Shown piece by piece: positions 1 through 53,423 of a stretch of 64,000 nucleotides of DNA. A program made the position numbers and the translations under genes. The notes under the pieces are model-generated. The model was not told the origin of the DNA. It ran no database searches and saw only the letters and a program-made list of their open reading frames with translations. The stretch is taken from the IMG/VR virus record IMGVR_UViG_3300022868_000009, positions 1 through 64,000 of that record, one strand, 5' to 3'. Each line of letters begins with the position of its first letter. The stretch's first letter is position 1.

Positions 1-236
1 AATTCTTCAGGTAATTTAGGTAATTCAGTTAATTGGTTATAATAACAATATAATCTTTTTAATCCTTTAGGTAATTCAGGTAATTTAGTTAATTGGTTAT
101 TACCACAATATAATCCTTCTAACCCTTTAGGTAATTCAGGTAATTTTTTTAAGAAAAAACCATCTAAATCTAATATTTTACCATCATCATAATCTTTAAT
201 TAATTTATTTTCATTGTATGTCTTTAAATACTTCAT
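1..236 (-). CDS. Leucine-rich repeat protein (bacterial 20-aa LRR, IpaH/SspH/YopM-like), partial; runs off the window start
   Basis: Manual translation from ATG at 236: MKYLKTYNENKLIKDYDDGKILDLDGFFLKKLPELPKGLEGLYCGNNQLTKLPELPKGLKRLYCYYNQLTELPKLPEE; paralog of the LRR gene at 20714-21253. Not in the ORF track. Confidence 0.85.
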   Translation of the reverse strand, partial: MKYLKTYNENKLIKDYDDGKILDLDGFFLKKLPELPKGLEGLYCGNNQLTKLPELPKGLKRLYCYYNQLTELPKLPEE

Positions 237-580
237 TAAATTATATTCATTTTACCAGCTTCTAAAAAAGCATTCATATCTAAATCTTCCAATTCAATAA
301 ACTCTTCAAATGAAAATTCATGAAAAATACCATTAAATCTAACTCTACTTTGATGTGATATTTCATCTTTTGTAGTATTAACAATCATCTTTTTAGGATT
401 AAAATTAACATATTTTGATTTTAAATGCTTGTATCCTATAATATCACTTGGCCAAACATAACCGTTATCAAAAAGTCTTTTTTGAACATATCTAGATTCT
501 TCTTCATTATTAACTCTAACAGCAAAAAAACATAAAATATCTGAACCAATTTCTTCTAAATATGTCTTTAAATATTTCAA
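236..580 (-). CDS. Hypothetical protein, MKYLKTY-family with C-terminal EAGKMNII motif
   Basis: 114-aa ORF (TTG start); its stop overlaps the next ATG (TAATG). Confidence 0.75.
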   Translation of the reverse strand: MKYLKTYLEEIGSDILCFFAVRVNNEEESRYVQKRLFDNGYVWPSDIIGYKHLKSKYVNFNPKKMIVNTTKDEISHQSRVRFNGIFHEFSFEEFIELEDLDMNAFLEAGKMNII

Positions 581-674
581 CTTTGTTTAATATTGTATTT
601 TACTTATATCAACTTATATATTTAATTTTCAAACTTAAATTTTTTAAATTCATATAAAAAGAAAAAGAATTAAT

Positions 675-983
675 ATGTCTACTTCAATTCCACATGGATG
701 GTATACAGATTCAACCGGAATATCTATATCAACTGGAACAACATTTACAAGTACTTACACAGATATTTATGAATCACCACCTACAACACTACAACAATTA
801 ATAGATTATTGTAATGATAGAAAATTAACTGAAAAAGATTTAGAATGGTTAGAATATAACGTACCTTTCACTATTAATATATATGAACAATTACAAAAAA
901 TTGAAAATAAATTAGATAAACCTTTTTCTGCGGTAGTTAAGCAAAAATTAAGAAAAATGAAATTGGATAGAGTTAAAGTTTAA
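675..983 (+). CDS. Hypothetical protein (S/T-rich N-terminus, RKMKLDRV C-terminus)
   Basis: 102-aa ORF with A-rich upstream region, opposite strand to its neighbours. Confidence 0.65.
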   Translation: MSTSIPHGWYTDSTGISISTGTTFTSTYTDIYESPPTTLQQLIDYCNDRKLTEKDLEWLEYNVPFTINIYEQLQKIENKLDKPFSAVVKQKLRKMKLDRVKV

Positions 984-988
984 ATATT

Positions 989-1477
989 TCATAATAACCC
1001 CAATTTTTCTCCTTCTATTTTATGTGCGTATTTTATAATAAATTTATCATAACTTAAATATTTCGCCACGTCATATATTAATTTTATAAAATCTTTTGAG
1101 TATATTTGTCCAGTATAATCTGTATAATCATTATAACTATTTATAATATTATTATAATCTGATTGATTAATTTGATTTTTATGTGTTATTAATTTACTTA
1201 ATGAAAAACCATAACCATGTTCAGCTATTCTAGACATAATTTTAATTTGTTCCAATTTTAATCTATCATCTATACTCCATGTAAATGTTTTAACATCACC
1301 AATACTGGTAATTAATTCATAATAATCTTCGAAAAGTTCTTCTTTTAATTCACGATCATGTATGTACTCTATATCTTGTTTTATGTGTTTAAAATGATGA
1401 TCATTTAAATCGTTTAATAAACCACTCAATTTTACAACTTCAGAATTTCTATCTTCATATGTCTTTAAATATTTCAT
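989..1477 (-). CDS. Hypothetical protein, MKYLKTYE / EGEKLGLL family
   Basis: 162-aa ORF carrying both terminal motifs. Confidence 0.8.
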   Translation of the reverse strand: MKYLKTYEDRNSEVVKLSGLLNDLNDHHFKHIKQDIEYIHDRELKEELFEDYYELITSIGDVKTFTWSIDDRLKLEQIKIMSRIAEHGYGFSLSKLITHKNQINQSDYNNIINSYNDYTDYTGQIYSKDFIKLIYDVAKYLSYDKFIIKYAHKIEGEKLGLL

Positions 1478-1761
1478 TACATTAAACCTAATTTACCACC
1501 CTCAACAATTGATTCAATATCACTAATATGTTCTGGGAATTTATAATTAAAATCATAATCATAATAATCTAAATTAATAAAATGAGATATGTTATAACCT
1601 AAAGATTTAACTGTCTCTTGTGCTGTACTTAGACTAAAATCATCTGAATATTGGTAATGTAATTTTCCGTTTATGTACATTGCTGCTTGATTAAAATCAT
1701 ACATAACAACAAAAATCACATCTTTATTCTCTTTATTTTCATATGTCTTTAAATATTTCAT
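1477..1761 (-). CDS. Hypothetical protein, MKYLKTYE / EGGKLGLM family
   Basis: 94-aa ORF carrying both terminal motifs; TAATG coupling to the next gene. Confidence 0.8.
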   Translation of the reverse strand: MKYLKTYENKENKDVIFVVMYDFNQAAMYINGKLHYQYSDDFSLSTAQETVKSLGYNISHFINLDYYDYDFNYKFPEHISDIESIVEGGKLGLM

Positions 1762-1787: not shown

Positions 1788-3440
1788 TTATATATTAAAA
1801 TTAAATTTTAAATTACCACTATCATATATTCTATATATTTCTCTTTCTATCATTATTTCATGTTCACTCTTATTTGAATCATATCCTTCACTAACCAAAA
1901 TATCTTTTCTAAAATTAAATCTGTATCTTCTAATACCATCTATTACATAGTGATAGTTTGGTTTAGTTTCATCAACAAAATCAAATCCTAATTTATAATA
2001 TAAATTACCCTTACTCCATGATCTATCAGCATAACTTATTATCTCTTTGAATTTATAATTTTTAATAAAATATTTAAATAATTTACTAGCACCACCAACA
2101 ACACTGACATTTAATTTATTGCAAAATCTCAATAACTCATAAATACCATTTTTACTTTTACCACCCAATGGCTTTCTAGTTTTACCAAAAGTCATTAAAC
2201 TTACCAATTCATTTTCATAATATAAACCAACTTTAACAGAAGAACCAACAAATCCTTGAATATGATTTTCTTTTAAAAATTGTCTAGATTCATTAATATT
2301 AACTTCTTTCAATTCACATTTCCTAGCATATATAATATTAGATTTACTTAGCAAGTTTAATATTCTAGATTTTATTATATCTTGTTTATATTTCCAATCA
2401 TCTTCATAAATATGAATAAGTTGTATATTTTTTTCTAGACATTTAATAGTTTTTTGATAATGATAATCATTTGATTTATTTAATTCATTATGCCAATATA
2501 CACCATTAAATTCAAAAGCTAATTTTAATTCTGGTAAATAAATATCTAATTCATAAGGTTTTAAAATTGTTCTATCGGAAATTATAATTTTATTATCATA
2601 GTTTTCTTTAATAAAATCTTGCAATTGTAATTGCATACCAGAAATATTATAACTATTTACTGGATTGCATTTTGTACATAGAATAGTTTCATATTTTATC
2701 CTATTATAAAGTAATACTGAAGATATCTCAAAATCATGCCCTTTTTCACAATTGAAAATATAAATCCCATTCTTTTTTATTTCTTTAATACCAAATTCTT
2801 TATATTTTTCTAATATATTCTTATTTTTAGTAGTTTTTATTTTTTCTTTAACATTTTCTAATTGAGAAGTATGTTCAACACCATATTTTTCCAAATTATT
2901 TTTAATTGTATTTTCTTTAACTTTATCACTTTTAGAAGAAATATCTGTGCCATATTTTTCAAGACATGTTTCTCTACTCTTTCCTCTTATTTCTTCTGAT
3001 TGCATTAAATATTCAACACCGTATTTTTGTTTATTTGTCTTCTTTTGTATTTCTTGTATTTCTTTATTTTTTAAGTGATGTGTTACACCATATTTTTCAA
3101 GACATGTTTCTTTGATCTTTTCTTTAATTTCCTCTAATTGAAAAACATTGTCAACACCATATTTTTTTTGTAATGTATTTTTTGTTTTATGTTGTTTACA
3201 TTTACTACAGTAATAATTTGTTTCTCCATTCGAAGTTATCTTATTATAATCACTATAAACAATATCTTTTTCAATTTTACAATGAAAACATCTAACTTTA
3301 ATTTTTTGCCTAGATTGTAAAGGTAATTCTGAAATAAATATTTCAATTATATCACCAGATTCACAATCATAGCCTAATTCTTTGTACCTACCCACATTTT
3401 TATTTGATAATTTTATTTTAATTTTCCTGTTGACAATCAT
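1788..3440 (-). CDS. Hef-like putative homing endonuclease (Zn-ribbons, EKYGV repeats, DUF559/Vsr-like nuclease domain)
   Basis: CxxC motifs, repeated KYGV units, ELDIYLPELKLAFEFNGVYWH nuclease motif, C-terminal GGASKLFKYF...ISYADR domain; paralog of 8010-9752. Confidence 0.75.
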   Translation of the reverse strand: MIVNRKIKIKLSNKNVGRYKELGYDCESGDIIEIFISELPLQSRQKIKVRCFHCKIEKDIVYSDYNKITSNGETNYYCSKCKQHKTKNTLQKKYGVDNVFQLEEIKEKIKETCLEKYGVTHHLKNKEIQEIQKKTNKQKYGVEYLMQSEEIRGKSRETCLEKYGTDISSKSDKVKENTIKNNLEKYGVEHTSQLENVKEKIKTTKNKNILEKYKEFGIKEIKKNGIYIFNCEKGHDFEISSVLLYNRIKYETILCTKCNPVNSYNISGMQLQLQDFIKENYDNKIIISDRTILKPYELDIYLPELKLAFEFNGVYWHNELNKSNDYHYQKTIKCLEKNIQLIHIYEDDWKYKQDIIKSRILNLLSKSNIIYARKCELKEVNINESRQFLKENHIQGFVGSSVKVGLYYENELVSLMTFGKTRKPLGGKSKNGIYELLRFCNKLNVSVVGGASKLFKYFIKNYKFKEIISYADRSWSKGNLYYKLGFDFVDETKPNYHYVIDGIRRYRFNFRKDILVSEGYDSNKSEHEIMIEREIYRIYDSGNLKFNFNI

Positions 3441-5329: not shown

Positions 5330-5351
5330 TTTTATAATTCTTTTTTTTTAT

Positions 5352-5359
5352 TATATATT
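5352..5359 (-). promoter_or_regulatory. Putative late promoter AATATATA upstream of the capsid gene
   Basis: The same octamer recurs within about 70 nt upstream of many structural and CTS-bearing genes. Confidence 0.6.
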
Positions 5360-5466
5360 TCCCTTTAAAAGTCTATTTTTTCCATTTTTGACTGTTTTTC
5401 AAGCCTTTTTTATCTGAAACCTTTGTCTTTATGAGGTTATATAAATATTATTTTTTAACGACCTAA

Positions 5467-7902
5467 TTATATATTTTTAAGTCTGTTATAGAATCTGTCT
5501 AATTGATCTTCTGATAATGTCGTATTATCAACTAGTTGGTTCTTTTGTAGAACTTGTTTAGATTCTTTAATTAATGAATAGTTTTCCATTTTTCTACTAT
5601 TCCAAAAAGCTTCCATTTTTGCAGGAGTATCTAAATTAGGATACAATTTAGCAGTTAATAGTATGCTTTTCTTTTGGTCATTTTCTAGACCTTCATATAT
5701 TGGTTGTAAATCACTAGGGATATTTTCTACCAATACATCTTCAAAAGTTTTCTTAACACTTAGAGCATCAGTCATAGCTTTAAGGACTTGATTTTCTGAA
5801 TAATACGTGCTTTCGTTTAATGCAAGTTTTACTTTTTCTCTATCTTCGTCAGTTAAAGAATGATAAGATTTTTTATTTCTCTCTGTTAAGAATTGTAAAA
5901 AATGAGGCTCGCTATTTGCAGCTACTTTACGTTTTTTAGTTTCAGTAATAAGTTTGCCAATTTGAGATTTCAATGAATCTTCATTTTCTAATATTTTATC
6001 ACCAATAATGATGATTTTACTTTCGTGTATTTGTAATTCTTCTTGATTGTCTGTTAATTTTAAAAGTACCATACCATCGTTAGGCATGTAAGCCATAACT
6101 TCACCTGGTCTATCATTAAATGTTGCAGTCATTCCAGGAACAATTTGATCACTAACTACTTCTTGTCCTTGTACACTCACAGGTGCAACACCTATACTAG
6201 TATCAACTACTGGTGGTTGTGCTTGTACATCAATTTGAGTCTGTGCTTGAACTGGTTGTCCAAATTCATCAACTTCAGCTTGAGCTTGAGCATCTTGTTG
6301 AACAAATTCTTGTCCTTGTTGAGCTTGAGCTTGAACATCTTGTACTTGTGCATCAGCGTCTAATTGTATTGGACTTTGAATTGCATCAGTTGTTTGTGCT
6401 TGAGTTTGATTTTGATTTTGAACAAAATCAGTATCAGTATCATTATCATAAAATCTTTCTACATTTTGAACTTTCATATTAGGCATTTGAGCACCTTGAT
6501 TTTCGTTCAGTTCACCACTATTTAAATGTTCAACAGTTTGGTCTAAAGATTCTGCAAGATAATTTTGATATGCTTGAGTATCAGCAACATTTTCTGCAAT
6601 ATATTCACTATAAGCGATATTGTTATCTACATGTTCTGCAATATATTCACTATAAGCGATATTGTTATCTACATGTTCTGCTACATACTCAGTATAAGCG
6701 ATATTGTTATCTACATGTTCTGCAATATATTCTGCATATTCAATATTGTTATCTACATGTTCTGCAATATATTCTGCATAAGCAATATTTTTATCAAGAT
6801 TTTCTGCTACATATTCTGAATAGTCGATAGATTTTTCAATTGATTCAGCTAAATAATCTGAAAATTGAATATTCTTATCAACGTTCTCAGCGATATACTC
6901 AGAAAAGTCGATATTTTTGTCTAATGTTTCAGCGATGTATTCACTGTAATCAATAGTTTTGTCTAATTCTTCAGCAATGTATTCTGAATAGTTGATAGAC
7001 TTTTCTAATTCTTCTGCTAAATAGTCATTGTGTTTAACAAGACCTTCTGTTTTAGCTTTCAATGTTGAGTTTTCATTAACTACATGTTGAATCTGATCAG
7101 CTAAATAATCTAAATAGCCTGTTACAGAAATTTGTTGTTCGTTTAAATTTTCTAGAAGTTCAGCCATTTTCATCATTCTCTCAGGTTCTACTCCACCTTT
7201 GGCATTTTCTTCAAAGAAACGTTGAACTGATTCAATTTGTTCAGTTAAATAATTTGAATACTCAATCATTTGATTTTTTGTTACAAATTCGTTGTTGTTA
7301 TTCATTTCTAAGAAATCATTAAATTTTGACGAATCTGATAAGTCATAAATACGAAAGTTTGAACTTTCATTAAAACCTAAAGACTCGTTGAGTGATTTTA
7401 ATTCCATTTTTGCAGAACTAAAACCTGGATCTGCAACGGCATCATATGTAAAAAGTTTCTTTATAGCCACCGTACCATTACTTTCAGTAATACCAGCCGC
7501 TCTAGAGCTAACAAAAATAGGGCAATTGTCATCGACTAATGCTTTAGCCTCTTTGCCCCAATGTGTATTAAGTAACCTAATTGTACCTTCTACTCTATTC
7601 GCTTGTGGATTATGAAAAATTGATTCCAATGTATGTGAAACTCTTGCAAGTGATGTATCGAACACGTCAGGATGATCGAATTCACCATATATGACACCTA
7701 AGTTTTTTTTACGTTCATTAAGTTCGCCTAAATGCGGTAAAAACTTATCAGAAGTATAAATTCTTTCATTACGATTAACTACATCAAATTCGGTAAAAAT
7801 ACCTCCTAAAATATATTCTTTCTTTTGAGAACTTTGCTCCTGAATGAGTTTTAAACCATCAGTCGAATTTTCAATGATCAAAACCGGTTTGTTTCCATTC
7901 AT
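5467..7902 (-). CDS. gp21: Prohead core protease (gp21-like) fused to a scaffold/core domain
   Basis: N-terminal GEFDHPD and FVSSRAAG catalytic motifs, YDAVADPGFSSA; followed by acidic 14-aa repeats, a Q-rich linker and a helical C-terminus. Confidence 0.9.
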   Translation of the reverse strand: MNGNKPVLIIENSTDGLKLIQEQSSQKKEYILGGIFTEFDVVNRNERIYTSDKFLPHLGELNERKKNLGVIYGEFDHPDVFDTSLARVSHTLESIFHNPQANRVEGTIRLLNTHWGKEAKALVDDNCPIFVSSRAAGITESNGTVAIKKLFTYDAVADPGFSSAKMELKSLNESLGFNESSNFRIYDLSDSSKFNDFLEMNNNNEFVTKNQMIEYSNYLTEQIESVQRFFEENAKGGVEPERMMKMAELLENLNEQQISVTGYLDYLADQIQHVVNENSTLKAKTEGLVKHNDYLAEELEKSINYSEYIAEELDKTIDYSEYIAETLDKNIDFSEYIAENVDKNIQFSDYLAESIEKSIDYSEYVAENLDKNIAYAEYIAEHVDNNIEYAEYIAEHVDNNIAYTEYVAEHVDNNIAYSEYIAEHVDNNIAYSEYIAENVADTQAYQNYLAESLDQTVEHLNSGELNENQGAQMPNMKVQNVERFYDNDTDTDFVQNQNQTQAQTTDAIQSPIQLDADAQVQDVQAQAQQGQEFVQQDAQAQAEVDEFGQPVQAQTQIDVQAQPPVVDTSIGVAPVSVQGQEVVSDQIVPGMTATFNDRPGEVMAYMPNDGMVLLKLTDNQEELQIHESKIIIIGDKILENEDSLKSQIGKLITETKKRKVAANSEPHFLQFLTERNKKSYHSLTDEDREKVKLALNESTYYSENQVLKAMTDALSVKKTFEDVLVENIPSDLQPIYEGLENDQKKSILLTAKLYPNLDTPAKMEAFWNSRKMENYSLIKESKQVLQKNQLVDNTTLSEDQLDRFYNRLKNI
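6541..7032 (-). repeat. About 12 tandem 42-bp (14-aa) repeats, consensus EYIAEHVDNNIAYS
   Basis: Visible directly in protein and DNA (e.g. gcaatatattcactataagcgatattgttatctacatgttct repeated). Confidence 0.9.
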
Positions 7903-7921
7903 AAGATTTTTCTTTTTTTAC

Positions 7922-7929
7922 TATATATT
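7922..7929 (-). promoter_or_regulatory. Putative late promoter AATATATA upstream of the protease-scaffold gene
   Basis: Recurrent octamer about 20 nt upstream of the start codon. Confidence 0.6.
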
Positions 7930-8009
7930 CAATCAAAATAACCTGTTTTTTCCATTTTTGGTGTCATTTATGGTCACATTTTTAAATATATAAATTAAAA
8001 ATATAATTC

Positions 8010-9797: not shown

Positions 9798-11513
9798 TTA
9801 GAATTGAGTCTGTACTCCACCTTCATCACCGCCTTGTACTCCGCCTTCTTGTGAACCACCACCTTCACCAAAGTCACTATCGCCTTCACCACCTTCACCA
9901 AAGTCACTGCCTTCATCACCACCTTCTCCACCTGGAGCACCTCCACTATCTGGAGCACCACCGCCTTGACCTGGAGCCATTCCACCACCAGTCATTTTGT
10001 ATTTGTCGTTTTCAGCTATATCTTCATCTGTTAATTTCATAATATTTCTAACAATCCACTCAATATGTAAATAAGGATCGCCTTTTTCATCTTGTAGGTT
10101 ACCACTTAATGTAGCAGCAATATCAGATCTTTTTGCTAAATTATTTAAATATTTCCATTCTTCAAATAAATGATTTTTATTAAAAATAGATTTCAATGAA
10201 TAATGAAATAAATTATCATCTTTTAATTCAGGAAAATCTAAAATTGTTTGTATTTTTAAAGGTTTAATTATAACTTCTTTAAATAATGTTTGTAGTCTTC
10301 TTATATAATTTCCAAATTTAATTTCTTCTCTTGTCATTTCAGCACTATCACTATAAATATTACCTCCACCACTTTCTTCCTCAAATCTACTAAATGGAAT
10401 ATGAGTAGCTCTTTTAAGGTTTTTATAAAACCAATTTAACATAGAATCTTCATTTAAATCAGTACCTTGTGATTGCATTATTTCAATATCTGGTGTTCCT
10501 TCACCTGACTGTGGAAACCAAAAATCTTTACTATGAGGAATATCTGTAGAACCATTTATACTAACAGTACCCATTCTATCATCCCATTGAACATCTTCAT
10601 GGTATTCAGCCATCAATTGATAAACTTGTTGTTCAGCTTGTTGTCTTGTCAAACCTCCAACTGGAATTACAAATTTCTTATACATAGCAGCTTGATTAAT
10701 ATTATATAGTAATCTTGTTTGTTCAACTAATTTTAATTGATTATAAGGTCTAATTAAATTTTCTACATAAGATGTTTCAGCATACTCATTATTATTTGAA
10801 TAAGAAATATAAATTATTTGTGAATCTAATAAAACTCTTCTTTGTTGTGGGTTATCTGGATATTGAATCCATACAACTGTAGATGTTCCAGGATCAGTAG
10901 CAACTATCAAAGTCATTGGATCTAAGGGAACTAAATCAATTATACTTTTTTGTCTATTATCATACACTAATTCAAATGTAATATATCCATCAATTAATAA
11001 AGATTTAAAATATTGCCATGCAGTAATACCATCATTAAACCCAAAATTTATCATTAATTTTTTATAATTTTCTTGATATTTTTGTTTAATTGTATTATCA
11101 AATTCATCTGGTAAATCTTGCATTTTACAAAATTGATTATCATCATTATAAATAACAGCTTCATTTGCTATATCTTCTAAAAATCCTTTAATTTCATCTT
11201 TAATAGAATATTGTCTAAGAATTTTTCTTTTATCTTCATAAGATCTATCTAAATATGCAATATTCTTCCTATTTAATACCTTAGAGATGACCTTTTTTGT
11301 AAAAATATCATACATATTAGTTCCTGATTCAGCATTAGTTTGATTTGGATCTTCATGTATTCCAACTGCTACAGTATTCTTTAATACCATATCACCATAA
11401 TCCATTCCGAATGTACTAAGATTTCTTAATAATCTATTAAAAAATCCTTTGTTTTCAACTGTTCCACCTAGATCAGATGTAGTATTTTTTTGATAAGGGT
11501 TATATGTTGCCAC
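9798..11513 (-). CDS. gp20: Portal vertex protein (T4 gp20-like)
   Basis: YISY, ENLIRPYNQLKLVEQTRLLY, KKFVIPVGGL, KDFWFP...G..TPDIE, WFYKNLKRATHIPFSRF, ITREEIKF-like motif; G/E-rich tail. Confidence 0.9.
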   Translation of the reverse strand: MATYNPYQKNTTSDLGGTVENKGFFNRLLRNLSTFGMDYGDMVLKNTVAVGIHEDPNQTNAESGTNMYDIFTKKVISKVLNRKNIAYLDRSYEDKRKILRQYSIKDEIKGFLEDIANEAVIYNDDNQFCKMQDLPDEFDNTIKQKYQENYKKLMINFGFNDGITAWQYFKSLLIDGYITFELVYDNRQKSIIDLVPLDPMTLIVATDPGTSTVVWIQYPDNPQQRRVLLDSQIIYISYSNNNEYAETSYVENLIRPYNQLKLVEQTRLLYNINQAAMYKKFVIPVGGLTRQQAEQQVYQLMAEYHEDVQWDDRMGTVSINGSTDIPHSKDFWFPQSGEGTPDIEIMQSQGTDLNEDSMLNWFYKNLKRATHIPFSRFEEESGGGNIYSDSAEMTREEIKFGNYIRRLQTLFKEVIIKPLKIQTILDFPELKDDNLFHYSLKSIFNKNHLFEEWKYLNNLAKRSDIAATLSGNLQDEKGDPYLHIEWIVRNIMKLTDEDIAENDKYKMTGGGMAPGQGGGAPDSGGAPGGEGGDEGSDFGEGGEGDSDFGEGGGSQEGGVQGGDEGGVQTQF

Positions 11514-11534
11514 GAATAAAAAGTTATTTTTGAT

Positions 11535-11542
11535 TATATATT
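11535..11542 (-). promoter_or_regulatory. Putative late promoter AATATATA upstream of the portal gene
   Basis: Recurrent octamer; a second copy at 11601-11608 (+) serves the divergent gene. Confidence 0.55.
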
Positions 11543-11668
11543 AAAATAATAAGTCCTCCTTAAAAACATATTTTTTAGAAAAAAATGACTTTAAAACTTC
11601 AATATATAATTTTGAGTTGTACCATAGAATTTTAAAAGGTGCAACATATAAAAAATAAACTTAAAATT

Positions 11669-12960: not shown

Positions 12961-13101
12961 ATGATTAAAGAAATAGGAGAAATGAAAGTTGCTAATATGT
13001 TAGCAAGTAAATTTTTAAAAGATTTTAATCCAGTAATTGATGAATATATAGTTCAATATATCGGAGCGGAAACAGAAGGTGAAAAAATGGGATTAATGTA
13101 A
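12961..13101 (+). CDS. 46-aa protein with C-terminal EGEKMGLM motif
   Basis: Manual translation MIKEIGEMKVANMLASKFLKDFNPVIDEYIVQYIGAETEGEKMGLM*; TAATG overlap with the next gene; below the ORF-track cutoff. Confidence 0.6.
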   Translation: MIKEIGEMKVANMLASKFLKDFNPVIDEYIVQYIGAETEGEKMGLM

Positions 13102-13586
13102 TGAAAAATCTAAAAACTTTTGAATCATATATAATAGACAAATATAAAGAACGGGGAGAAAATAGTGAAAAAGAACGTGAAATTCATGGAGAAATACAAA
13201 AACTTCAAAACAAAATCTACATTTTACAAAAAAAAGAAAGTGAATATGTTAGAAAAAATGATAAATCTAATTTTTTTTTAAATGAAGAATATTTTAAATT
13301 AAAAAATATCTTACCATTCGAAGATAATGGTCGATTTTTAATTTTCACATTCGATAAACTTTGTACAATAGAAAATAAATCATACCAAGATTTAAGAATA
13401 AAGAAAAACAACACAAAACGTCTTTCTAATTTTAGTTTAGGTATTTCTTCAAATAAAAGATCTGATACTCATGACCCAAGTACAGTTGTAACAGATTTCA
13501 AAGTTCAAAAACAATACAAAATATTAGATTGGATACATGTAAATTATCCAGAATATTTTCAAGCAAATAAATTAGGACTGTTATGA
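13101..13586 (+). CDS. Hypothetical protein, MKNLKTFE / QANKLGLL family
   Basis: 161-aa ORF carrying both terminal motifs. Confidence 0.8.
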   Translation: MKNLKTFESYIIDKYKERGENSEKEREIHGEIQKLQNKIYILQKKESEYVRKNDKSNFFLNEEYFKLKNILPFEDNGRFLIFTFDKLCTIENKSYQDLRIKKNNTKRLSNFSLGISSNKRSDTHDPSTVVTDFKVQKQYKILDWIHVNYPEYFQANKLGLL

Positions 13587-14086
13587 AATATTTAATAACA
13601 TATAATGAATTAACAGGTTCAGCTAGTTATCCATACGAATTAGTTAAAACAAAAAATATAATCTTAGATGATGATGAAACAGTAACAATGATAACATATA
13701 AATTTAAATCTAAAGGTGGTAATATATATACAAATATCCTTCAATTTAAAGGAGATGATAATCATATGTTTTCTGTAAATTTTCAAGATGAAGATAGTTA
13801 TTTTAAAGAACTTGATAAAGATGGTATTTATGATATTAATTATTTAAATACAAATAAAGGTGATGCTGTCATGATTATTTCTACTGTTTGTAATATTATT
13901 CAAGATTATTATGAAAAACATAAAGATCATCTATATTTATTTGGGTTTACTGTAACAGAACCTAAAAGATTAAATATATATAAATATTATCTTCAAAACA
14001 TGTTTCCTGAATGGAAATTAGAAGAAGAAGAAATTAAAGATAATATTCATCGTTTAACTTGTACTAAAGATATAATTTTCGATTAA
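13583..14086 (+). CDS. Hypothetical protein with MKYLITYNE N-terminus
   Basis: 167-aa ORF; weak similarity by eye to the C-terminal part of 28712-29359. Confidence 0.75.
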   Translation: MKYLITYNELTGSASYPYELVKTKNIILDDDETVTMITYKFKSKGGNIYTNILQFKGDDNHMFSVNFQDEDSYFKELDKDGIYDINYLNTNKGDAVMIISTVCNIIQDYYEKHKDHLYLFGFTVTEPKRLNIYKYYLQNMFPEWKLEEEEIKDNIHRLTCTKDIIFD

Positions 14087-20393: not shown

Positions 20394-20726
20394 ATGATAG
20401 TTTCATTTAATGAATTTCTTAATGAAAATTTTATTTCTGGAAGATTTCTCACCAATATTAATGGCAGAGAAATTGTACTTAAACTTCAAGTAGAATATAT
20501 AAATTTATTAACAAAAGTTTATCTTATAAAAGATAATAAAGTTTATGATAATTTATCTATTAATTTACCTGATTCACGTAAACTTAGAGAAGGTGAATTC
20601 TTTTTAAATCCTGATATTAATTCTAATATTGTAAAAGAATTAACAAAACAAAACTTTATAACAAAACAAAAAACAGAATCGATTGCAGGTGATAAAAAAA
20701 CAACAGCATACAAATTAAATATTTAA
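20394..20726 (+). CDS. Hypothetical protein with CTS-like N-terminus (MIVSFNEFLNE)
   Basis: 110-aa ORF; AATATATA at 20361-20368. Confidence 0.7.
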   Translation: MIVSFNEFLNENFISGRFLTNINGREIVLKLQVEYINLLTKVYLIKDNKVYDNLSINLPDSRKLREGEFFLNPDINSNIVKELTKQNFITKQKTESIAGDKKTTAYKLNI

Positions 20727-21253
20727 AGACATATAGTGAAAATCAATTAATTAATGACCATTTAAGTGATGATGGTAAAACATTAGATTTAACTGGTTTA
20801 AATCTAACTGAATTACCTGAATTACCTAAAGGGTTAAAAACATTATATTGTTATAATAACTATTTAACTGAATTACCTGAATTACCAAAAGGGTTAAAAG
20901 AATTATTTTGTAATAATAACCAATTAACTAAATTACCTGAATTGCCTAAAGGCTTATTAAAATTAGATTGTGAAGATAACAAATTAACTAAATTACCCGA
21001 ATTACCTAAAAATTTAGAAGAGTTATATTGTGAAAATAACCAATTACCTGAATTACCTGAATTACCTAAAGGATTAAAAAGTTTATATTGTAATCATAAC
21101 CAATTAACTAAATTACCTGAATTACCAAAAGGGTTAGAATATTTATTTTGTAATTATAATGAATTACCTTATGATGATTTAGATGGTTATTGGGAATGGT
21201 TTTGGAAAGAAAACCCAGACCTTCATAATGCAAATAAAATGGGATTATATTAA
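20714..21253 (+). CDS. LRR protein (about 8 x 20-aa LPELPKGL repeats) with IKYLKTYSE start and NANKMGLY end
   Basis: The frame of ORF 20942-21253 is open back to 20696; at 20714 ATT AAA TAT TTA AAG ACA TAT gives IKYLKTY, matching the paralog at 1-236; implies a non-ATG start (ATT/ATA) or a mutated ATG. Confidence 0.8.
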   Translation: MKYLKTYSENQLINDHLSDDGKTLDLTGLNLTELPELPKGLKTLYCYNNYLTELPELPKGLKELFCNNNQLTKLPELPKGLLKLDCEDNKLTKLPELPKNLEELYCENNQLPELPELPKGLKSLYCNHNQLTKLPELPKGLEYLFCNYNELPYDDLDGYWEWFWKENPDLHNANKMGLY

Positions 21254-22795
21254 ATGAAATATTTAAAAACATACAAATTATTTGAAAACCCTAACCATAT
21301 TTATAAAAATATTAAAGGAGAATGGATTGATTTATCATTCGAAGATGATGATGCAATTCCATTTTTTTATGATATTGAATTAAATACTATATTTTTAGGT
21401 CAATCAAAAATTGATGGTATATACTATATACACCCCGAATTAATACAAATTGTCAATAAACATAGATCACAAAAAGGGTACGCACCATTAAGCATTTATG
21501 ATACAAATCTATTATACTCTGGTAGAATTTGGAAAGGTAGAAAAGTAATATCTTTTTGGTCATATCCAGATAAAGAAATGTTTGACATTATAATAAATAA
21601 ATTAGAAGATAAATCTTCTGTAAGAATATGGGGTAATGATTGGTTAATTGAAGTAGTTATAGGTGATGATAATATATCAATTAAAAATTTACCTTACAAT
21701 TGGAAAGATAACAACGCAATGGAAAAAGGTATAATTAAAATGGTACCTGTTGATGAATATGATAAAAGTGAAAACTTTGATAGAGAAGATCATATTAAAT
21801 CACCATTAAATAAATCTAAAAAACCGACATACTATAAAACATCTAAACACAAACCAAAAAATATCACTAATATTGAATATAAAGGAATGATGAAAAATAT
21901 ATATCAAGAAAGTATATTATCATTTGGAGAATATATTAAAGAAACTCCTGATTATATTTATAATAGAAATACTGAGTGGGAAATGGAATGGTCTGATGAT
22001 GATGCAAGACCTTTTCAATATTTAACTAATGATCTTTTTTCCGGTGAAAAAAGTGGTGAATTTCATTTAGGTAATTATGGCGACAATCATCCAGATATGT
22101 TTCCTTCAGGTGGATTATATTCAGGTAGAATATGGGATGACCCATCAAAACAAATAATATCATTTTGGGATTATCCACCAAATAAAGAAGAATTCAAAAA
22201 AATTATAGATCAATTAGAAAGAAAAACTGGGCATAAGATTTGGAATAAAGATTGGAAAATAGAAGTTTTAGTCGATAAAAACATTAATAGATGGGATATT
22301 GAAGCCGGTGATGATATGACTTCAGATTTAGAATCAATAATAATACCTGTTGTAGATTATACTGGTAGTGAAGACACTCCTAAAGAATTATTAAATATGC
22401 ATTTAAAAGATAAATCTAAACTCAAAGTTCCAACTGGTTTTGGTTCTAAACATAAACATAAATATCAAACAAATCTTGAACCGATTCGTTATAAAAATAT
22501 GATGAAAAATGTATTTACTGAAAATGTAGACACAAAACCAAAAAGAAAGAAGAAAAAAGTAATATACGAAGCAATTATCAATGATATTAAAGGAAATATT
22601 ATATCATATATAACTAATTTTAAAATGACTAAATTAGAAGAAAAGTGGATGACTTGTAATGTAAAAGGATACAAGAAAAAGAAAGTTGAAGGATACAAAA
22701 CTAAAGTTTGGGTTTATTTTGAAGATAAACTTAAATTAAATACAAAATGTTTTAAAAATGGTAAAATAGAATTACTAGTAATAGATGATAAATAA
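21254..22795 (+). CDS. Hypothetical protein with an internal tandem duplication and MKYLKTY N-terminus
   Basis: Two copies of YSGRIW...ISFW.YP..E.F..II..LE......IW..DW.IEV. Confidence 0.8.
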   Translation: MKYLKTYKLFENPNHIYKNIKGEWIDLSFEDDDAIPFFYDIELNTIFLGQSKIDGIYYIHPELIQIVNKHRSQKGYAPLSIYDTNLLYSGRIWKGRKVISFWSYPDKEMFDIIINKLEDKSSVRIWGNDWLIEVVIGDDNISIKNLPYNWKDNNAMEKGIIKMVPVDEYDKSENFDREDHIKSPLNKSKKPTYYKTSKHKPKNITNIEYKGMMKNIYQESILSFGEYIKETPDYIYNRNTEWEMEWSDDDARPFQYLTNDLFSGEKSGEFHLGNYGDNHPDMFPSGGLYSGRIWDDPSKQIISFWDYPPNKEEFKKIIDQLERKTGHKIWNKDWKIEVLVDKNINRWDIEAGDDMTSDLESIIIPVVDYTGSEDTPKELLNMHLKDKSKLKVPTGFGSKHKHKYQTNLEPIRYKNMMKNVFTENVDTKPKRKKKKVIYEAIINDIKGNIISYITNFKMTKLEEKWMTCNVKGYKKKKVEGYKTKVWVYFEDKLKLNTKCFKNGKIELLVIDDK

Positions 22796-23156
22796 ATACG
22801 AAAAATTCATATATGAACGTTTAGGACAGAATGAAGGTGATATTAATATCGTTGGTATTCATGTTAATGATAAAAATCTAGATGTAATACTTGAAGAAAT
22901 ATCAAATTATTTTAACTTGAAAAGCTTTTTAAATGCTGATTTTGTAAGAAAAAGTGCATCTAGAGAATTGTTTTATGTTAATATATATCCAGTCAATAGT
23001 AATTATAATTACTTTTGGAATAGTATAAATGAATATGATAATATCTTTAATGATTTGGATGAACCTAATACATATAAACTAGAAGATTGGTTTGAAAAAT
23101 ACTTAAATGTTACATTAGAAGAATTTGTAGAAGCTAAAAAATTAGGACTATTATAA
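22785..23156 (+). CDS. Hypothetical protein, CTS-like start / EAKKLGLL end
   Basis: 123-aa ORF. Confidence 0.75.
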   Translation: MINKYEKFIYERLGQNEGDINIVGIHVNDKNLDVILEEISNYFNLKSFLNADFVRKSASRELFYVNIYPVNSNYNYFWNSINEYDNIFNDLDEPNTYKLEDWFEKYLNVTLEEFVEAKKLGLL

Positions 23157-41590: not shown

Positions 41591-42286
41591 CTAAATCTTT
41601 TCGTATTGTTTTTTCCATTTCCTAATAGCATTATCACTAACACCATACTTTCTTCCTACACCACAATAACCTAATTCAACTATTTCTTTTATCAATTCTT
41701 TATATGTTGGTCTTTCTATTTTTCTCTGACTCTTAGATACACATTCTCTACATTTAATAGCAGATTTAGTAATCTCATTTCCACATTCACAATAATATTT
41801 CTTTTTCTCCGTAACGTAATTATATTTACTATTTCCAATATTCTTACCACCGTGTGTTTCTAAACCAGCATTACAATTTGGACAAACAATTCTAAGATTT
41901 TCTATTCTATTATCATTATTTACACCGTTTTTATGATCTAATATTAAACTGATTTTTACATCATTCCATTCTTCACCTTGATTACACAACTCACATTTTC
42001 TTTCTTTTAACCCTTCTTTGTATAATCTATCTTTTAAATTAGTTGTATAAGTATACGTCGAATTTTCTACTAATATTTCTTTTGTTTTTATTTTAGTAAA
42101 ATTACCACCATTACTATGAAACTTAAAATGTGTTATATCTAAATTATAAGTTTTAATATATTTTTTAATAGTTTGCCTATTTCCATAATATGGTTTTAAT
42201 CCTAAATTTCTAGCAACATCTGATAAATTACCAGATTCAGAAACTATTTTACTAAAATACTCTTTTTCATATCTATTTGTTTTCAT
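41591..42286 (-). CDS. HNH homing endonuclease with C-terminal Zn-ribbon/HTH
   Basis: LILDHKNGVNNDNRIENLRIVCPNCN, YYCECG, KYGVSDNAIRKW. Confidence 0.85.
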   Translation of the reverse strand: MKTNRYEKEYFSKIVSESGNLSDVARNLGLKPYYGNRQTIKKYIKTYNLDITHFKFHSNGGNFTKIKTKEILVENSTYTYTTNLKDRLYKEGLKERKCELCNQGEEWNDVKISLILDHKNGVNNDNRIENLRIVCPNCNAGLETHGGKNIGNSKYNYVTEKKKYYCECGNEITKSAIKCRECVSKSQRKIERPTYKELIKEIVELGYCGVGRKYGVSDNAIRKWKKQYEKI

Positions 42287-42365
42287 AAGATTTTATTTTT
42301 ATATATTAAAATCTTCGAACCCAAATTCAAATTAACCAACATTTCAATGAACCTTTATTTTCTTG

Positions 42366-42442
42366 CGGTCCCTACGGGATTCGAACCCGTCTGTTTTTCC
42401 TGAGTGACAGTCAGGTGGCCACGCCAAGCAACCCCAGAGACC
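42366..42442 (-). tRNA. tRNA-Asp (GTC)
   Basis: GGTCTCT / CCTGA-CTGTCAC-TCAGG / ACGGG TTCGAAT CCCGT / G73. Confidence 0.9.
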
Positions 42443-50520: not shown

Positions 50521-51086
50521 TTTTTTACAACTGCTATTTTTAGTATTTTTTCATTTCTCACATATTCATAATGATCAAAATGACCATCTTCATAAATATC
50601 TACTGGTGCTGCTTTATTCCAATCACTAAATAAACCTAAAAAATAATTATAAATAAATGCTACCCATTCACCACAGATAAATTTCTTACCTGATTTACTT
50701 TTACTTCTACCAATCCATATTTCTTTACCAAATAATTTTTTCCAAATATATCTTACTGGTTGATAAAATAATAAATTAATAAATTCGTAAGGCGTGTGGC
50801 CTGTATATTCTAAAACAAAATTAATGATATCACTTTTCATTTTATCATCAATATTTTTCTTAGGTTTCAAAATCATTAACCCTTTATCTGATTCTATATA
50901 ATCTTCAAATTTTGTTAATGCTATTCCATGTTTATCTGCTTCAATGACATATAATATACCATTTAACCATAAAAAAAATGCTGAATGGTTAAATTCACAA
51001 TCTTCGAACCATTGTATCGCCTCTGGTAAAATACCTTTAGAACTAACTAATAAATTATCACCTGTTTCAATTTGAATATTTCCCAT
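50517..51086 (-). CDS. Permuted papain-like amidase (YiiX/YaeF, C92-like)
   Basis: GDNLL, FNHSA (His) before ICGEWV (Cys), PY. Confidence 0.7.
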   Translation of the reverse strand: MGNIQIETGDNLLVSSKGILPEAIQWFEDCEFNHSAFFLWLNGILYVIEADKHGIALTKFEDYIESDKGLMILKPKKNIDDKMKSDIINFVLEYTGHTPYEFINLLFYQPVRYIWKKLFGKEIWIGRSKSKSGKKFICGEWVAFIYNYFLGLFSDWNKAAPVDIYEDGHFDHYEYVRNEKILKIAVVKK

Positions 51087-51115
51087 ATTTAATTTTTTAT
51101 TTTATATATTAATTT

Positions 51116-52291
51116 TCAATTTTGACTTTGAAATCCAATTCTTTTCTTTTCTTGTATACTAATAATCTGATTATGACCTTCATAAATCTCTGATAAAGTT
51201 GTTGGATTATCAAAAGTTTTTCCATTATCTAAATGTTTACATAACTTATTAGCTTGTTTAGGTTTCAAAGCTTTAAATTCATAATTAACTTTTAATCTAC
51301 CAGCTCTTAATAAAGCAGGATCTATCTCTTTATTAGATGTATTAAATGTTGAAATTATTTGAACCTCCAAATGATCATTTAATAAACCATCTGTCATATT
51401 TAATATATTTGCAATAGCTTGTGTTCTTTGCATAAATGTATTAGATATAATATTCTCCGAATCTTCTAATATTAAAATAGATTTCTTAAATTTAGAAATA
51501 AAAGACATGAAACCTGGTTCTGCTATACTTTCCATCATATAAGGTGGAACATAAATTACAGTTTTTTCTTCTGAAAGGTCTGCAATTAGTTTACGAACAT
51601 ATGAAGTTTTACCAACCCCAGGCTGGCCGTGTAATAAAAACAATCCAAATTTATCATTTTTTAATGAATCAACAATTTTCTTATCTATTTCGATGAAATC
51701 CTTACCATAATTTAATTCAAGATTAAAATCCATTTCTTTGATATATGAACCTAGTAATTGATACCCATTATCACCAACTCCAATCGTAAAAAATTGATTC
51801 TTTTTACGTGGAATATACATACATTTTTCAATATCTTTCAACATTTCATCTTCAATCCATTTTGAAGTTATAATATCTGGATCATAATATATCATTAAAT
51901 GTTGAACTTTATCAGTTTTATCTTCACTGGTTGCAAAATCATGATAATCATCATCATCTAAATTCCTAAACTCATCAAAAAATGTAAAGTAAAACATCAA
52001 ATCACCTCTATTATTTAAAATTTTAACATAATACTTATAATCTTTAAAAGATCTATTCTTTTCATCAATAGATACTTCTGTGTTTCTCATAATAACATCA
52101 CCTTCCATGTTTTTAGTAATTTGCCATTTTTCTTCAAGATATTGCCACCAAAGATCAGAATGTATTTCTTGATTAACATAATATTTACCGACATATTTGT
52201 TAAATTGTAGACACATAAGATTAAAGTCAACTTCAATTTGTGCCATTGAGTATAAGGTATTTTCACCAAATTTAATGTCAAATGTATTCAT
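51116..52291 (-). CDS. AAA-family ATPase
   Basis: LLHGQPGVGKT, ILILEDSE, ILNMTDGLL, DPALLRAGRL. Confidence 0.85.
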   Translation of the reverse strand: MNTFDIKFGENTLYSMAQIEVDFNLMCLQFNKYVGKYYVNQEIHSDLWWQYLEEKWQITKNMEGDVIMRNTEVSIDEKNRSFKDYKYYVKILNNRGDLMFYFTFFDEFRNLDDDDYHDFATSEDKTDKVQHLMIYYDPDIITSKWIEDEMLKDIEKCMYIPRKKNQFFTIGVGDNGYQLLGSYIKEMDFNLELNYGKDFIEIDKKIVDSLKNDKFGLFLLHGQPGVGKTSYVRKLIADLSEEKTVIYVPPYMMESIAEPGFMSFISKFKKSILILEDSENIISNTFMQRTQAIANILNMTDGLLNDHLEVQIISTFNTSNKEIDPALLRAGRLKVNYEFKALKPKQANKLCKHLDNGKTFDNPTTLSEIYEGHNQIISIQEKKRIGFQSQN

Positions 52292-52376
52292 TTCTTAATA
52301 TTTAATTTTGTAATTTGATTTTAAATTATACATTATTTTAATGGAAAAGTTATATTTTTATTTAAGGTTGGGAAGA

Positions 52377-53423
52377 TTACATTATTCCTAATTTCTGTGC
52401 GTTATATATTGATTGTATATTATTAATTATGTTGTTTAATTCTTTATCATCTAAATTTTTAATTTTATTAGAAAAATCTCTAGAAGCAAACCATTTATAA
52501 CATTTGCTTTTTGGTTTTGCAAATTCCACTAAATATTTAAGTCTAGAATAACTTTTCATTTTATATTGCCATAAAATATCATCAAAATGTTCTTTTAGTA
52601 TATCAACATTATCTTTATAAACAACATTAACCCAAAAGAAATCTTCTGGTAATTTAGATTCATTATCCCAATATCTATCAATTTCAAATTCTAAATCATT
52701 CTGGAGTTGTTGGTAATCTTTTTTAGATTCATATTCTTGCGATTGATATTCAATATCATATGTATAAGGTAAATTATTACCAACTAATCTAAAAAAATCA
52801 CCTATACTATTAATATCTTTATCTTTTATATATTTTAAAAGTGCATCATATTCTACTGTGACACTTACACCATTTTGATATTTACCTGTATAAATAAAAT
52901 CATAATAAAATGGTTGTTCATTTGAGATTTCTTTCTCAATTAATATGGATAATGCTTTTTCTTTCACAATAGATAGTGAATATTTAAACGAATCTTTAAT
53001 TTCTTCAAGGTCAAAATTTTCAAAGAAAACTGCAAATTCTCCCTCATCAACATTATTATTTACATAATCAATCTTATTATCAAGATATTTTGCGAAATTT
53101 AAAACTTTTTGTATTTGTTGTGTAGTCATATAATGATGAATATAATTTACCTCATCATCATCAATATAAAATTCATAACCATATGAATTTGCAAATCTTA
53201 ACCATTCAATAACACCTCTTTCAATTTCCAATAAATCTTCAAAATCATCTATTTTAATATCAAATGATAATTCATCTTTTTCAACTTCTAAATAACCGTG
53301 ATTTTCTTGAATATCTAAATAATTTGAGATTTCTTCTGGTTTCTCTTCACCAGACATAATTTTCTCAACTACTTCTTTTAGGATAGAATTTTTAATATCT
53401 TCAAAATATTTAATATATTTCAT
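52377..53423 (-). CDS. Hypothetical acidic protein, MKYIKYFE / NAQKLGIM family
   Basis: 348-aa ORF with both terminal motifs; AATATATA at 53429-53436. Confidence 0.8.
   Translation of the reverse strand: MKYIKYFEDIKNSILKEVVEKIMSGEEKPEEISNYLDIQENHGYLEVEKDELSFDIKIDDFEDLLEIERGVIEWLRFANSYGYEFYIDDDEVNYIHHYMTTQQIQKVLNFAKYLDNKIDYVNNNVDEGEFAVFFENFDLEEIKDSFKYSLSIVKEKALSILIEKEISNEQPFYYDFIYTGKYQNGVSVTVEYDALLKYIKDKDINSIGDFFRLVGNNLPYTYDIEYQSQEYESKKDYQQLQNDLEFEIDRYWDNESKLPEDFFWVNVVYKDNVDILKEHFDDILWQYKMKSYSRLKYLVEFAKPKSKCYKWFASRDFSNKIKNLDDKELNNIINNIQSIYNAQKLGIM

Follow-up and report, generated by a model that had tools for sequence, protein, structure and literature searches.

Introduction

In bacteriophage T4, every internal head protein is targeted by a short terminal peptide, and the N-terminal capsid targeting sequence (CTS) alone suffices (PMC5694885). 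In the T4 record, ipII and ipIII begin with MKTYQEFIAE. Short peptides at the opposite, free C-terminus are classically read by Clp unfoldases. ClpX and ClpA recognize the ssrA (..LAA-COOH) and MuA (..RRKKAI-COOH) degrons there, and ClpA degrades ssrA-tagged substrates even without its N-domain. The β-clamp motif QL[S/D]LF, exemplified by ..QLGLF-COOH in Pol II and QMSLL in MutS, is another short peptide of this kind. Here, we describe a C-terminal octapeptide on eight proteins encoded in a 64,000-nucleotide stretch of viral DNA (IMG/VR record IMGVR_UViG_3300022868_000009, positions 1 to 64,000; the window hereafter). The eight octapeptides had been listed in a first-pass annotation of the window; all are present at the coordinates in Table 1, and the open reading frames (ORFs) translate as claimed.

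The window is the left end of the IMG/VR contig G000 (344,634 bp, 25% GC), and its host genome is a T4-like-headed "Mahaphage"-type huge phage from a salt lake. The tail [E/N/Q][A/G/S]xK[L/M]G[L][L]-stop, called the tag below, closes 68 of the 549 G000 proteins (greedy ORF set), 123 of 717 in a 434 kb sequence merged from G000 and a second contig (G002), and 155 of the 976 ORFs (16%) when a third contig (G003) is included.

The tag resembles the T4 CTS of IPI–III and Alt in being a short terminal peptide on unrelated, fast-evolving small proteins of a phage with T4-type head genes. However, the CTS comprises the first 10–20 N-terminal residues of a handful of proteins, whereas the tag comprises the last 8–12 residues of 16% of the ORFs (125 terminal versus 8 internal occurrences) and is not enriched on CTS-class proteins. 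It also lacks an adjacent prohead-protease site, [L/I]-x-E with cleavage after the Glu: Glu occurs at position −8 in only 60 of 123 cases, and the hydrophobic residue lies at P2, not P3. The tags of the relatives G006 and LR756504 have no Glu at the equivalent position. With the ssrA and MuA degrons and the SspB XB tether, the tag shares the free C-terminus, a hydrophobic end (L/I/M/Y/F), an upstream basic residue and a modular, transferable character. As in Clp-degron systems, ClpP and an IGF-loop Clp ATPase are available, being encoded by the same phage. In contrast to ssrA (..YALAA) and MuA (..RRKKAI), the consensus xK[LM]GLL fits no described Clp degron, and while the ssrA peptide is added by transfer-messenger RNA (tmRNA), the tag is genome-encoded on more than 150 proteins, with a proposed reader that would be phage-encoded and lineage-specific.

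Encapsulin cargo-loading peptides and the C-tails of herpesvirus and P22 scaffolds, which address diverse cargo inside an HK97-fold shell, are likewise short C-terminal peptides or helices of small and hydrophobic residues. Unlike the encapsulin peptides, the tag has no match to a GSLxIGSL-type consensus, and many of its carriers are apparently early genes. The β-clamp pentapeptide x-[L/M]-small-L-[L/F], often C-terminal, is also similar, but position 1 of the tag is K in 93, N in 10, R in 7 and Q in 6 of 123 cases (K 76%, Q 5%). Moreover, the tags KFNL, RKxIIEELL and NADDFGLI misfit the clamp motif, and more than 150 clamp ligands would be implausible. PDZ ligands, which have S/T, a hydrophobic or an acidic residue at P−2, differ, as P−2 of the tag is Gly or Asn, and no PDZ_2 match was found among the phage-encoded proteins of five phage contigs. 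The eukaryotic peroxisomal targeting signal PTS1 (-SKL) and KDEL offer the closest parallel in organization: very short, extreme C-terminal peptides on many unrelated proteins with one receptor, and the proteome share of about 10–17% is typical of a sorting signal. They are unrelated to the tag in sequence, and no compartment or receptor is known in these phages.

Results and Discussion

A Terminal Peptide on Unrelated Proteins

Over the last 12 residues, the consensus reads [D/E/K/P]-x-[Y/L/I/F]-[L/I/F/Y]-[E/N/Q]-[A/G/S]-x-K-[L/M]-G-L-[L/I/Y/M], with Gly at the Gly position in 112 of 123 tags and Asn in the remaining 11. The eight window tails scored 18.8–29.6 bits with a 12-residue position-specific scoring matrix (PSSM). 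At a threshold of 8 bits or more, 125 of 717 C-termini were detected versus 8 of 125,317 internal windows, and the score distribution was bimodal. The terminal restriction was also seen for the relatives' own tags (84 terminal versus 2 internal occurrences in G006, 35 versus 1 in G005), and a reversed-pattern control yielded 2 hits versus 44. The first-pass annotation had allowed for a chance origin, in which the motif would be no commoner than in shuffled C-termini. This can be dismissed: its pattern matched 8 of 96 window ORFs and 60 of 976 phage ORFs, whereas in 1000 shufflings of the last 30 residues the matches averaged 0.001 and never exceeded 1.

The codons of the tag vary synonymously, which argues for selection on the protein and not on the DNA. 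Leu at the conserved positions is encoded by TTA, TTG, CTA, CTT, CTG and CTC, Gly by all four of its codons, and Met and Leu interchange at position −4. The Gly codon GGA is used in 78% of the tags with a downstream start within 15 nt and in 61% of the others, as compared with 29% genome-wide. This bias may be a translational-coupling effect on top of the peptide signal.

The claim that the carriers are otherwise unrelated was borne out at the sequence level. With the terminal 10 residues removed on either side, the 188 proteins with an N- or C-terminal motif fell into 147 phmmer clusters; the 68 carriers of G000 formed 52 BLAST clusters. The mean pairwise identity was 47% over the last eight residues and 7.5% over residues 21–28. 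Pfam, PHROGs and PADLOC searches with the 68 carriers returned only leucine-rich repeats (LRRs) and a few function-less PHROGs, with nothing in common. A profile search with the 68-sequence alignment against 5.8 billion proteins found only LRR proteins and the query's own cluster; a database so large makes E-values too strict for a motif-only match. For single window carriers, the 989..1477 protein had no Pfam match above the curated cut-off; the 1477..1761 sequence is held in the ESM Atlas with a low-confidence model and no named relatives or informative neighbours.

The carriers are small (median 123 aa) and slightly acidic, and their genes often form tandem arrays, as many as 11 in a row. 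Carrier genes are densest in the first 23 kb and in an accessory arm from ~296 kb on. LR756501, a complete genome, has homologues of just 4 of 155 carriers, as compared with 216 of 821 proteins without the tag. Neither the scaffold-protease, which ends in ..FYNRLKNI, nor a 438-aa portal neighbour carries the tag. A 239-aa ORF (merged 418,089-418,808) has a perfect tag (DWIFDANKMGLL) in mid-protein and ends in a second tag-like sequence, as though two tagged modules had been joined through loss of a stop codon.

Text searches of the literature for the motif strings, related concepts, and phage ClpP with degrons found no description of the tag, which looks like an undescribed protein address label. 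Protein-level selection, extreme C-terminal placement, more than 100 unrelated bodies and the orthologue tail swaps described below all uphold the annotation's proposal of an undescribed C-terminal signal common to unrelated proteins. The tag is a genuine terminal recognition peptide, and its proteome-wide scale is unprecedented in phages.

Lineage-Specific Tags in Relatives

By portal sequence, the closest relatives are the uncultured "Mahaphage"-type LR756501 (735 kb, 62% identity) and LR756504, and the Lak phages are more distant. For clade members with genomes above 634 kb, Bacteroidetes are the predicted hosts (PMC7162821). We compared G005, G006, LR756500, LR756501 and LR756504, a sample of complete records of 462–735 kb and contigs about 33–50% complete by CheckV. 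Their large shared proteins have about 40% identity to those of this phage.

Where this phage (at least 600 kb) has [E/N/Q][A/G/S]xK[L/M]GL[L], the 330 kb contig G006 has [T/A/S][N/K]K[F/Y]N[L/I] on 104 of 615 ORFs, including 56 of the 63 proteins with the N-terminal motif discussed below. The 235 kb contig G005 carries the G006-type tag on 49 of 412 ORFs. LR756504 (636 kb) has ..RKxII[E/N/D][E/N/D]L[L/I] on about 50 small array proteins, a set almost disjoint from its 39 N-motif proteins (1/39). In LR756500 (462 kb), NADDFG[L/F][I/F](DN) closes about 14 paralogues of about 260 aa; it is positionally equivalent to NAxK[L/M]GL[L/I] of this phage, with Lys replaced by Asp. The complete LR756501 (735 kb) has no C tag and contains 106 copies of DPYGEExW instead.

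The tags are mutually exclusive: no ORF of G005, G006 or LR756504 carries the tag of this phage, and no ORF of this phage carries theirs. Homologous proteins exchange tails according to genome. The LRR family ends in ..NPDLHNANKMGLY in this phage and in ..NPERKQAKKFNL in a homologue with the G006-type tail, with NANKMGLY replaced by QAKKFNL at the aligned position, and has no tail in LR756501. The 52377-53423 protein ends in ..IYNAQKLGIM and its G006 homologue, at the aligned position, in ..IVNADKFNI. A further family shows ..TNANKLGLI versus ..INSEKYNI, and the KYPDKY family swaps likewise. All 17 tagged proteins with a G006 homologue (17/17) match a protein bearing the G006-type tail. Mutual exclusion and genome-dependent swaps on orthologues point to one co-evolving reader per lineage. 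Such a concerted, proteome-wide replacement is what would be expected of many ligands tracking one receptor; a helix with a purely structural role would hardly account for it.

The LR756504 tag arrays, with ends of the form ..[E]YRKxII[E/N/D][E/N/D]L[L/I], lie at 0-45 kb and 600-636 kb, and one tagged gene (291,481-291,825) is directly downstream of a ClpP gene (291,825-292,514). In LR756501, [L/I]DPYGEExW occurs in about 90 proteins; about 40 copies lie 2–6 residues from the C-terminus, and others are internal (up to four per protein) or directly follow the MIKKF-type N motif. The DPYGEExW motif was absent from the other four genomes compared. As a different abundant motif of a 735 kb phage, it is a by-product of interest to T4 biologists.

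Shape of the Tag

An AlphaFold2 model of the LRR carrier 20714..21253, built from a 12-sequence alignment, had a mean predicted local distance difference test score of 93.8, with residues 1–4 disordered. Its tail forms a helix (168–175, DLHNANKM) after a Pro-Asp start. The helix stops before G177, and the last four residues are non-helical. Gly and Asn are the best residues for the left-handed conformation at helix C-caps, and the Gly/Asn interchange in the tag fits such a picture. A small residue is conserved four positions ahead of this Gly/Asn. The model suggests that the tag is a short terminal helix that Gly, or Asn in relatives, brings to an end, with one or two hydrophobic residues and a free carboxylate beyond it. 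The ends of the LRR solenoid are far apart, so the N- and C-terminal motifs presumably need not touch. The LRR family has at least 14 copies in this phage. At 20714, the LRR gene reads ATT in place of the ATG of its paralogues, the only start offered by the ORF finder being a TTG at 20942; either a rare start codon is used or the start has been lost.

Clp Machinery

The phage encodes candidate readers of a free C-terminus. G003 contains a bona fide ClpP (128107-128766; 215 bits) and a two-ring, ClpC-like Clp ATPase (113199-115205) without an N-domain, as in the ClpA variant that still degrades ssrA-tagged substrates, and with a GIGF loop for ClpP docking. The ClpC-like gene has a phage-type promoter-like motif upstream. 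A ClpB-like paralogue without an IGF-type loop is encoded in G000. Among the tagged relatives, G005 has ClpP and an IGF ATPase, the G009 fragment has ClpP, and LR756504 has three ClpP along with two VGF-loop ATPases, one ClpX-like and one ClpC-like. In the complete LR756501, which has no C tag, ClpP is absent and the only Clp ATPase is ClpB-like and loop-less. Judged by gene content, ClpP with an IGF- or VGF-loop ATPase thus appears to go with an abundant, strictly C-terminal tag in this phage, G005, G009 and LR756504. No tmRNA with a tail-like tag was found in this phage, G005, G006, LR756501 or LR756504; the only tmRNA found in the clade, in LR756500, encodes GNNAEMRMAA.

N-Terminal Motif and Scaffold Repeats

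The N-terminus MK[Y/H]LKT[Y/F](N/S/E)E starts 91 proteins of the phage, and the C tag is found on 58 of these (odds ratio 14, p = 2e-28). The annotation's statement that the tag is usually paired with a CTS-like N-terminus therefore holds in the window (6/8), but genome-wide only 58 of 155 tagged proteins (37%) are paired, despite the strong association. A second class comprises 44 N-termini that are nearly identical to the T4 CTS (e.g., MKTYIEFLNE, MKKYGEFINE, MKTKFNQFINE; pattern [F/Y]x[polar][F/Y][I/L/V]xE). The C tag shows no enrichment in this canonical class (odds ratio 0.9). A [LIV]xE site within residues 3–22 was found in 24 of the 91 MKYLKTY proteins versus 300 of 885 background proteins. 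In LR756501, orthologues of the MKYLKTY class begin with that genome's CTS-like MI[K/T]K[F/Y]xxF; the homologue of the 13583..14086 protein, for instance, starts with MIKKFKLFE. A DNA pattern for MKYLKTY was matched in more than 115 IMG/VR stretches, mostly AT-rich contigs, many of them large.

The scaffold extension of the prohead protease contains about 12 tandem 14-aa repeats with Y[S/A]EY[I/V]AE (~6493-7005, minus strand), and the LR756501 orthologue has the same repeats. They closely resemble the T4 CTS MKTYQEFIAE and the T4 [I/L]xE cleavage site. From these sequences, the resemblance suggests that the T4-type CTS is a copy or mimic of one scaffold repeat, including the [I/V]-A-E cleavage site, which would be of interest to T4 biologists.

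Promoter-Like Elements

The promoter-like motif T[T/A]AATATATA lies 16–25 nt upstream of the genes for the major capsid protein (MCP), protease and portal and of about 90 other genes, and 5–8 nt upstream of many genes with both the N and C motifs (N+C genes). It precedes 39% of the N+C, 30% of the N-only, 15% of the untagged and 8.5% of the C-only genes. The shorter spacing may reflect leaderless transcripts. The motif is reminiscent of the T4 late TATAAATA; its window sites are within 5330-5466, 7903-8009 and 11514-11638, and it also occurs upstream of HNH genes.

Another element, TTTA-N17-CCGTAT[A/C]TTTG, has about 14 intergenic copies at G000 303,800-323,300 (plus strand), partly before C-only arrays. 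TAnnTTTG is the −7 box of Flavobacterium and Bacteroides promoters (PMC7641319), and the TTTA-N17-TAnnTTTG boxes match the Bacteroidota −33/−7 consensus. G000 303,800-323,300 is probably an early region; a tRNA array also lies there. Several tag-only arrays stand behind these host-type boxes, so some of them would be early and host-transcribed, in poor agreement with a pure packaging signal.

Possible Functions of the Tag

With the above results in hand, our preferred, though tentative, explanation (rough probability 0.3) is that the tail is a phage-private degradation tag, read by the phage's ClpC-like/ClpP machinery, by which effectors made early or injected would be kept short-lived. The portable octapeptide, placed on more than 150 unrelated small accessory proteins, would be read by a single lineage-specific receptor, namely the phage's own ClpC-like unfoldase, whose IGF loop would dock on ClpP. 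On this view, the tagged proteins are effectors that the phage would require solely as infection begins. One group would be produced early, the arrays behind host-type boxes being its source; another, with the MKYLKTY signal, would be produced late, perhaps enclosed in the capsid and carried into the next cell. After expression of phage Clp, all free tagged copies would be cleared, which would limit the time of effector action and stop late-made copies from acting in the producing cell. We keep our confidence in a degron low because the sample is small and phylogenetically non-independent and the tail has no likeness to known degrons.

Several observations weigh against a degron. The Clp correlation comprises about five related, non-independent genomes. 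No ClpP was found in the G006 contig, which is about 46% complete, and LR756500 has two weak ClpP hits, yet only about 14 tagged paralogues. The tail is unlike known Clp degrons, a destruction tag on 16% of all genes seems costly, and the MKYLKTY coupling in this phage and in G006 is more directly explained by a shared packaging pathway. ClpP is also present in jumbo phages without reported tags of such a kind (PMC7824862), and the early and late assignments are based on promoter-like motifs only. A more elaborate version of the degron, which we regard as very improbable, makes the tagged proteins a targeted-degradation library: their rapidly evolving bodies would each bind a different host protein, such as a defence or housekeeping factor, and the tail would hand the complex to the phage ClpC-like/ClpP. 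In each huge-phage lineage, the protease and its tail would then evolve together as a private pair. Animal viruses use the host degradation machinery through adaptors such as Vif and E6, and the library would be their counterpart in a bacterial virus.

The tail could instead serve capsid packaging, retention or ejection together with the MKYLKTY N-terminus, by anchoring cargo to an inner prohead component (MCP floor, scaffold or portal) or by ordering its exit through the tail. We consider this rather unlikely. The head genes are T4-like, with tagged genes flanking the head module in the window, and the YSEYIAE repeats fused to the protease resemble the T4 CTS. The tag and MKYLKTY are associated here (odds ratio 14) and in G006 (56/63), the N motif corresponds to a clearly CTS-like MI[KT]K[FY]xxF in LR756501 orthologues, 39% of the N+C genes share the promoter-like motif of MCP, protease and portal, and the carriers are as small as T4 internal proteins (median 123 aa). 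The link to capsid packaging drawn in the first-pass annotation is weaker than implied. Canonical CTS-class proteins are not tag-enriched (odds ratio 0.9), only 24 of the 91 MKYLKTY proteins have a [LIV]xE site, 97 of the 155 tagged proteins lack MKYLKTY by the motif patterns used, and several arrays are behind host-type boxes. In LR756504, the tagged and N-motif sets barely overlap (1/39), and the tail has no [LIV]xE cleavage site beside it that is conserved between lineages. The orthologues in LR756501 keep the N motif without the C tag, which implies that the tag is not needed for packaging in this clade, and in T4 the N-terminal CTS is enough by itself (PMC5694885). A complex prediction of MCP with the 94-aa carrier 1477-1761 scored 0.00, but it was run without controls and is no evidence for or against binding. 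Docking to another hub of host or phage origin (an SspB XB-like adaptor tether, a chaperone, RNA polymerase, the clamp or the membrane) is likewise fairly improbable. Here, the variable bodies would be specificity modules and the constant tail a handle. Exclusive tags and tail swaps imply one reader per lineage, and the strictly extreme C-terminal position and the conserved small-xxx-G/N helix face agree with it; the 106 copies of DPYGEExW in LR756501, which can be internal or repeated, behave as a binding motif, not as a degron. However, no candidate hub was found, with no PDZ domain in the five phage contigs. The β-clamp motif does not fit, as K replaces its defining Q at position 1. The Lys → Asp change in the LR756500 tag (NADDFGLI) argues against simple membrane binding by a basic amphipathic helix, and more than 150 ligands would compete for one site.

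Two further explanations dispense with a peptide signal. The carriers might belong to one ancient, explosively diverged paralogous family whose last helix is the most conserved part. Many carriers are indeed 90–130 aa long and arranged in tandem arrays with runs of up to 11, small BLAST-related subfamilies exist, and the LR756500 tail is limited to one paralogous family of about 260 aa. Nevertheless, the same tail closes LRR solenoids, a 46-aa mini-protein, and proteins of 348 aa and 210–243 aa, and the LRR model is already one case of a clearly distinct fold. The 147 clusters left after end trimming have no detectable common homology outside the ends, and a structural helix would neither change in concert or swap by genome nor need a terminal place. 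We therefore regard a single family as very unlikely. Alternatively, a feature at the nucleic-acid or translation level (ribosome-binding or coupling signal, promoter, terminator or recombination handle) might mimic a peptide motif. GGA is over-used in the tag, and many tagged genes overlap the next start (TTATGA, TAATG). This explanation is barely credible in view of the use of all synonymous Leu and Gly codons and the Met/Leu alternation at −4, and the tag is no rarer in the absence of a following gene. A reversed pattern, used as a control (2 hits versus 44), also speaks against it, and 24 nt with such variation is too short for homologous recombination. We rejected the DNA-level or ribosome-binding-site origin on the synonymous variation, the GGA bias aside.

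Huge phages contain hundreds of small genes without an assigned function, and here a sequence rule groups about one-sixth of a proteome and predicts a single reader. The class is tractable by experiment, since the 12-residue peptide can be fused to a reporter. The N motif and lineage tags recur in several genomes of the Mahaphage clade and may represent a general organizing principle. If the tail is a private degron or a packaging signal, it would provide a ready-made orthogonal tag for synthetic biology in Bacteroidota.

Genome and Gene Neighborhood

The contig G002 matches G000 exactly in the overlap and adds 89,063 bp, giving a merged sequence of 433,697 bp; CheckV estimates G000 to be about 48% complete. 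The third contig, G003 (166.6 kb), has the same GC content as G000 and is almost certainly part of the same genome. BLAST hits in the merged sequence were obtained for only 28 of its 259 ORFs, and its large proteins match LR756501 genes other than those matched by G000/G002. G003 closes with a gene that is also present, at 100% identity, at the G000 break point, and the contig co-occurs with the window contig in at least 15 sequencing runs from the salt lake, in closely matching shares. None of the runs listed for the phage is an RNA run. On the basis of the few shared homologues, the complementary genes, the identical end gene and the co-occurrence, we ruled out G003 as an independent lineage. 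Taken as one genome, the contigs give a phage of at least 600 kb. The break-point gene (388 aa; merged G000 344,636-345,802 and G003 165,429-166,595) has further copies in G003 with 47% and 29% identity; it is probably mobile and fragments the assembly.

The genes of the window that bear on the tag are collected in Table 1, together with the canonical-CTS-class ORFs, of which about 40 more exist. The stop of the tagged gene 1477..1761 shares one base with the start of the next tagged gene. The ORF 20394..20726 has a weak tag-like end, AYKLNI, and overlaps the LRR gene.

Table 1. Tagged, N-motif, canonical-CTS-class and head genes. Coordinates are those of the window except where G000 is given.
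Coordinates	Strand	Product	N-terminus	C-terminal tail (position)	Score or other support
236..580	-	114-aa ORF, TTG start	(M)KYLKTYLEE	EAGKMNII (239-262; stop 236-238)	18.8 bits
989..1477	-	162-aa ORF	MKYLKTYED	EGEKLGLL (992-1015)	20.1 bits
1477..1761	-	94-aa ORF	MKYLKTYEN	EGGKLGLM (1480-1503)	21.1 bits
3566..5329	-	gp23-like MCP			Pfam Gp23 E = 6e-27; phrog_138
5467..7902	-	T4 gp21-like prohead protease (S77) fused to long scaffold-like extension			homology
9798..11513	-	gp20-like portal			Pfam Portal_T4 E = 5e-67
12961..13101	+	46-aa mini-ORF, smallest window carrier	without N motif	EGEKMGLM (13075-13098)	18.8 bits
13101..13586	+	161-aa ORF	MKNLKTFES	NYPEYF, then QANKLGLL (13560-13583)	29.6 bits
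13583..14086	+	167-aa ORF, N motif only	MKYLITYNE	without C tag	
14608-15156		canonical-CTS-class ORF			
20394..20726	+	110-aa ORF, canonical T4-CTS-like	MIVSFNEFLNEN		phage-type promoter-like motif upstream
20714..21253	+	LRR protein (LPELPKGL repeats)	(I)KYLKTYSEN	NANKMGLY (21227-21250)	
21254..22795	+	513-aa ORF, N motif only	MKYLKTYKLFEN		
22785..23156	+	123-aa ORF	MINKYEKFIYE (T4-CTS-like class)	EAKKLGLL (23130-23153)	25.4 bits
49472-50173		canonical-CTS-class ORF			
52377..53423	-	348-aa ORF	MKYIKYFED	NAQKLGIM (52380-52403)	
G000 107441-108358		canonical-CTS-class ORF			

Large HNH homing-endonuclease paralogues (phrog_3339) are located between the head genes at 1788-3440 (minus strand) and 8010-9752 (plus strand). 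Further copies were found at G000 95,580, 100,168 and 130,817, so that the genome contains at least five. Ten tRNA genes lie in the window at 35,981-42,442 (minus strand), and about 25 more elsewhere. Two tRNAs have the anticodon CTA (amber-suppressor type, labelled 'Pyl' by ARAGORN) and map to G000 112,614-112,688 and 140,629-140,701. TAG is the stop codon in 64 of 717 ORFs overall and in just 4 of the 123 with the tag; with an ORF coverage of 93% under code 11, general recoding is not evident. A 555-aa ORF (23157-24824, minus strand) adjoining the tagged gene 22785-23156 gave a weak serine/threonine-kinase-like hit (phrog_2361, E = 2e-9).

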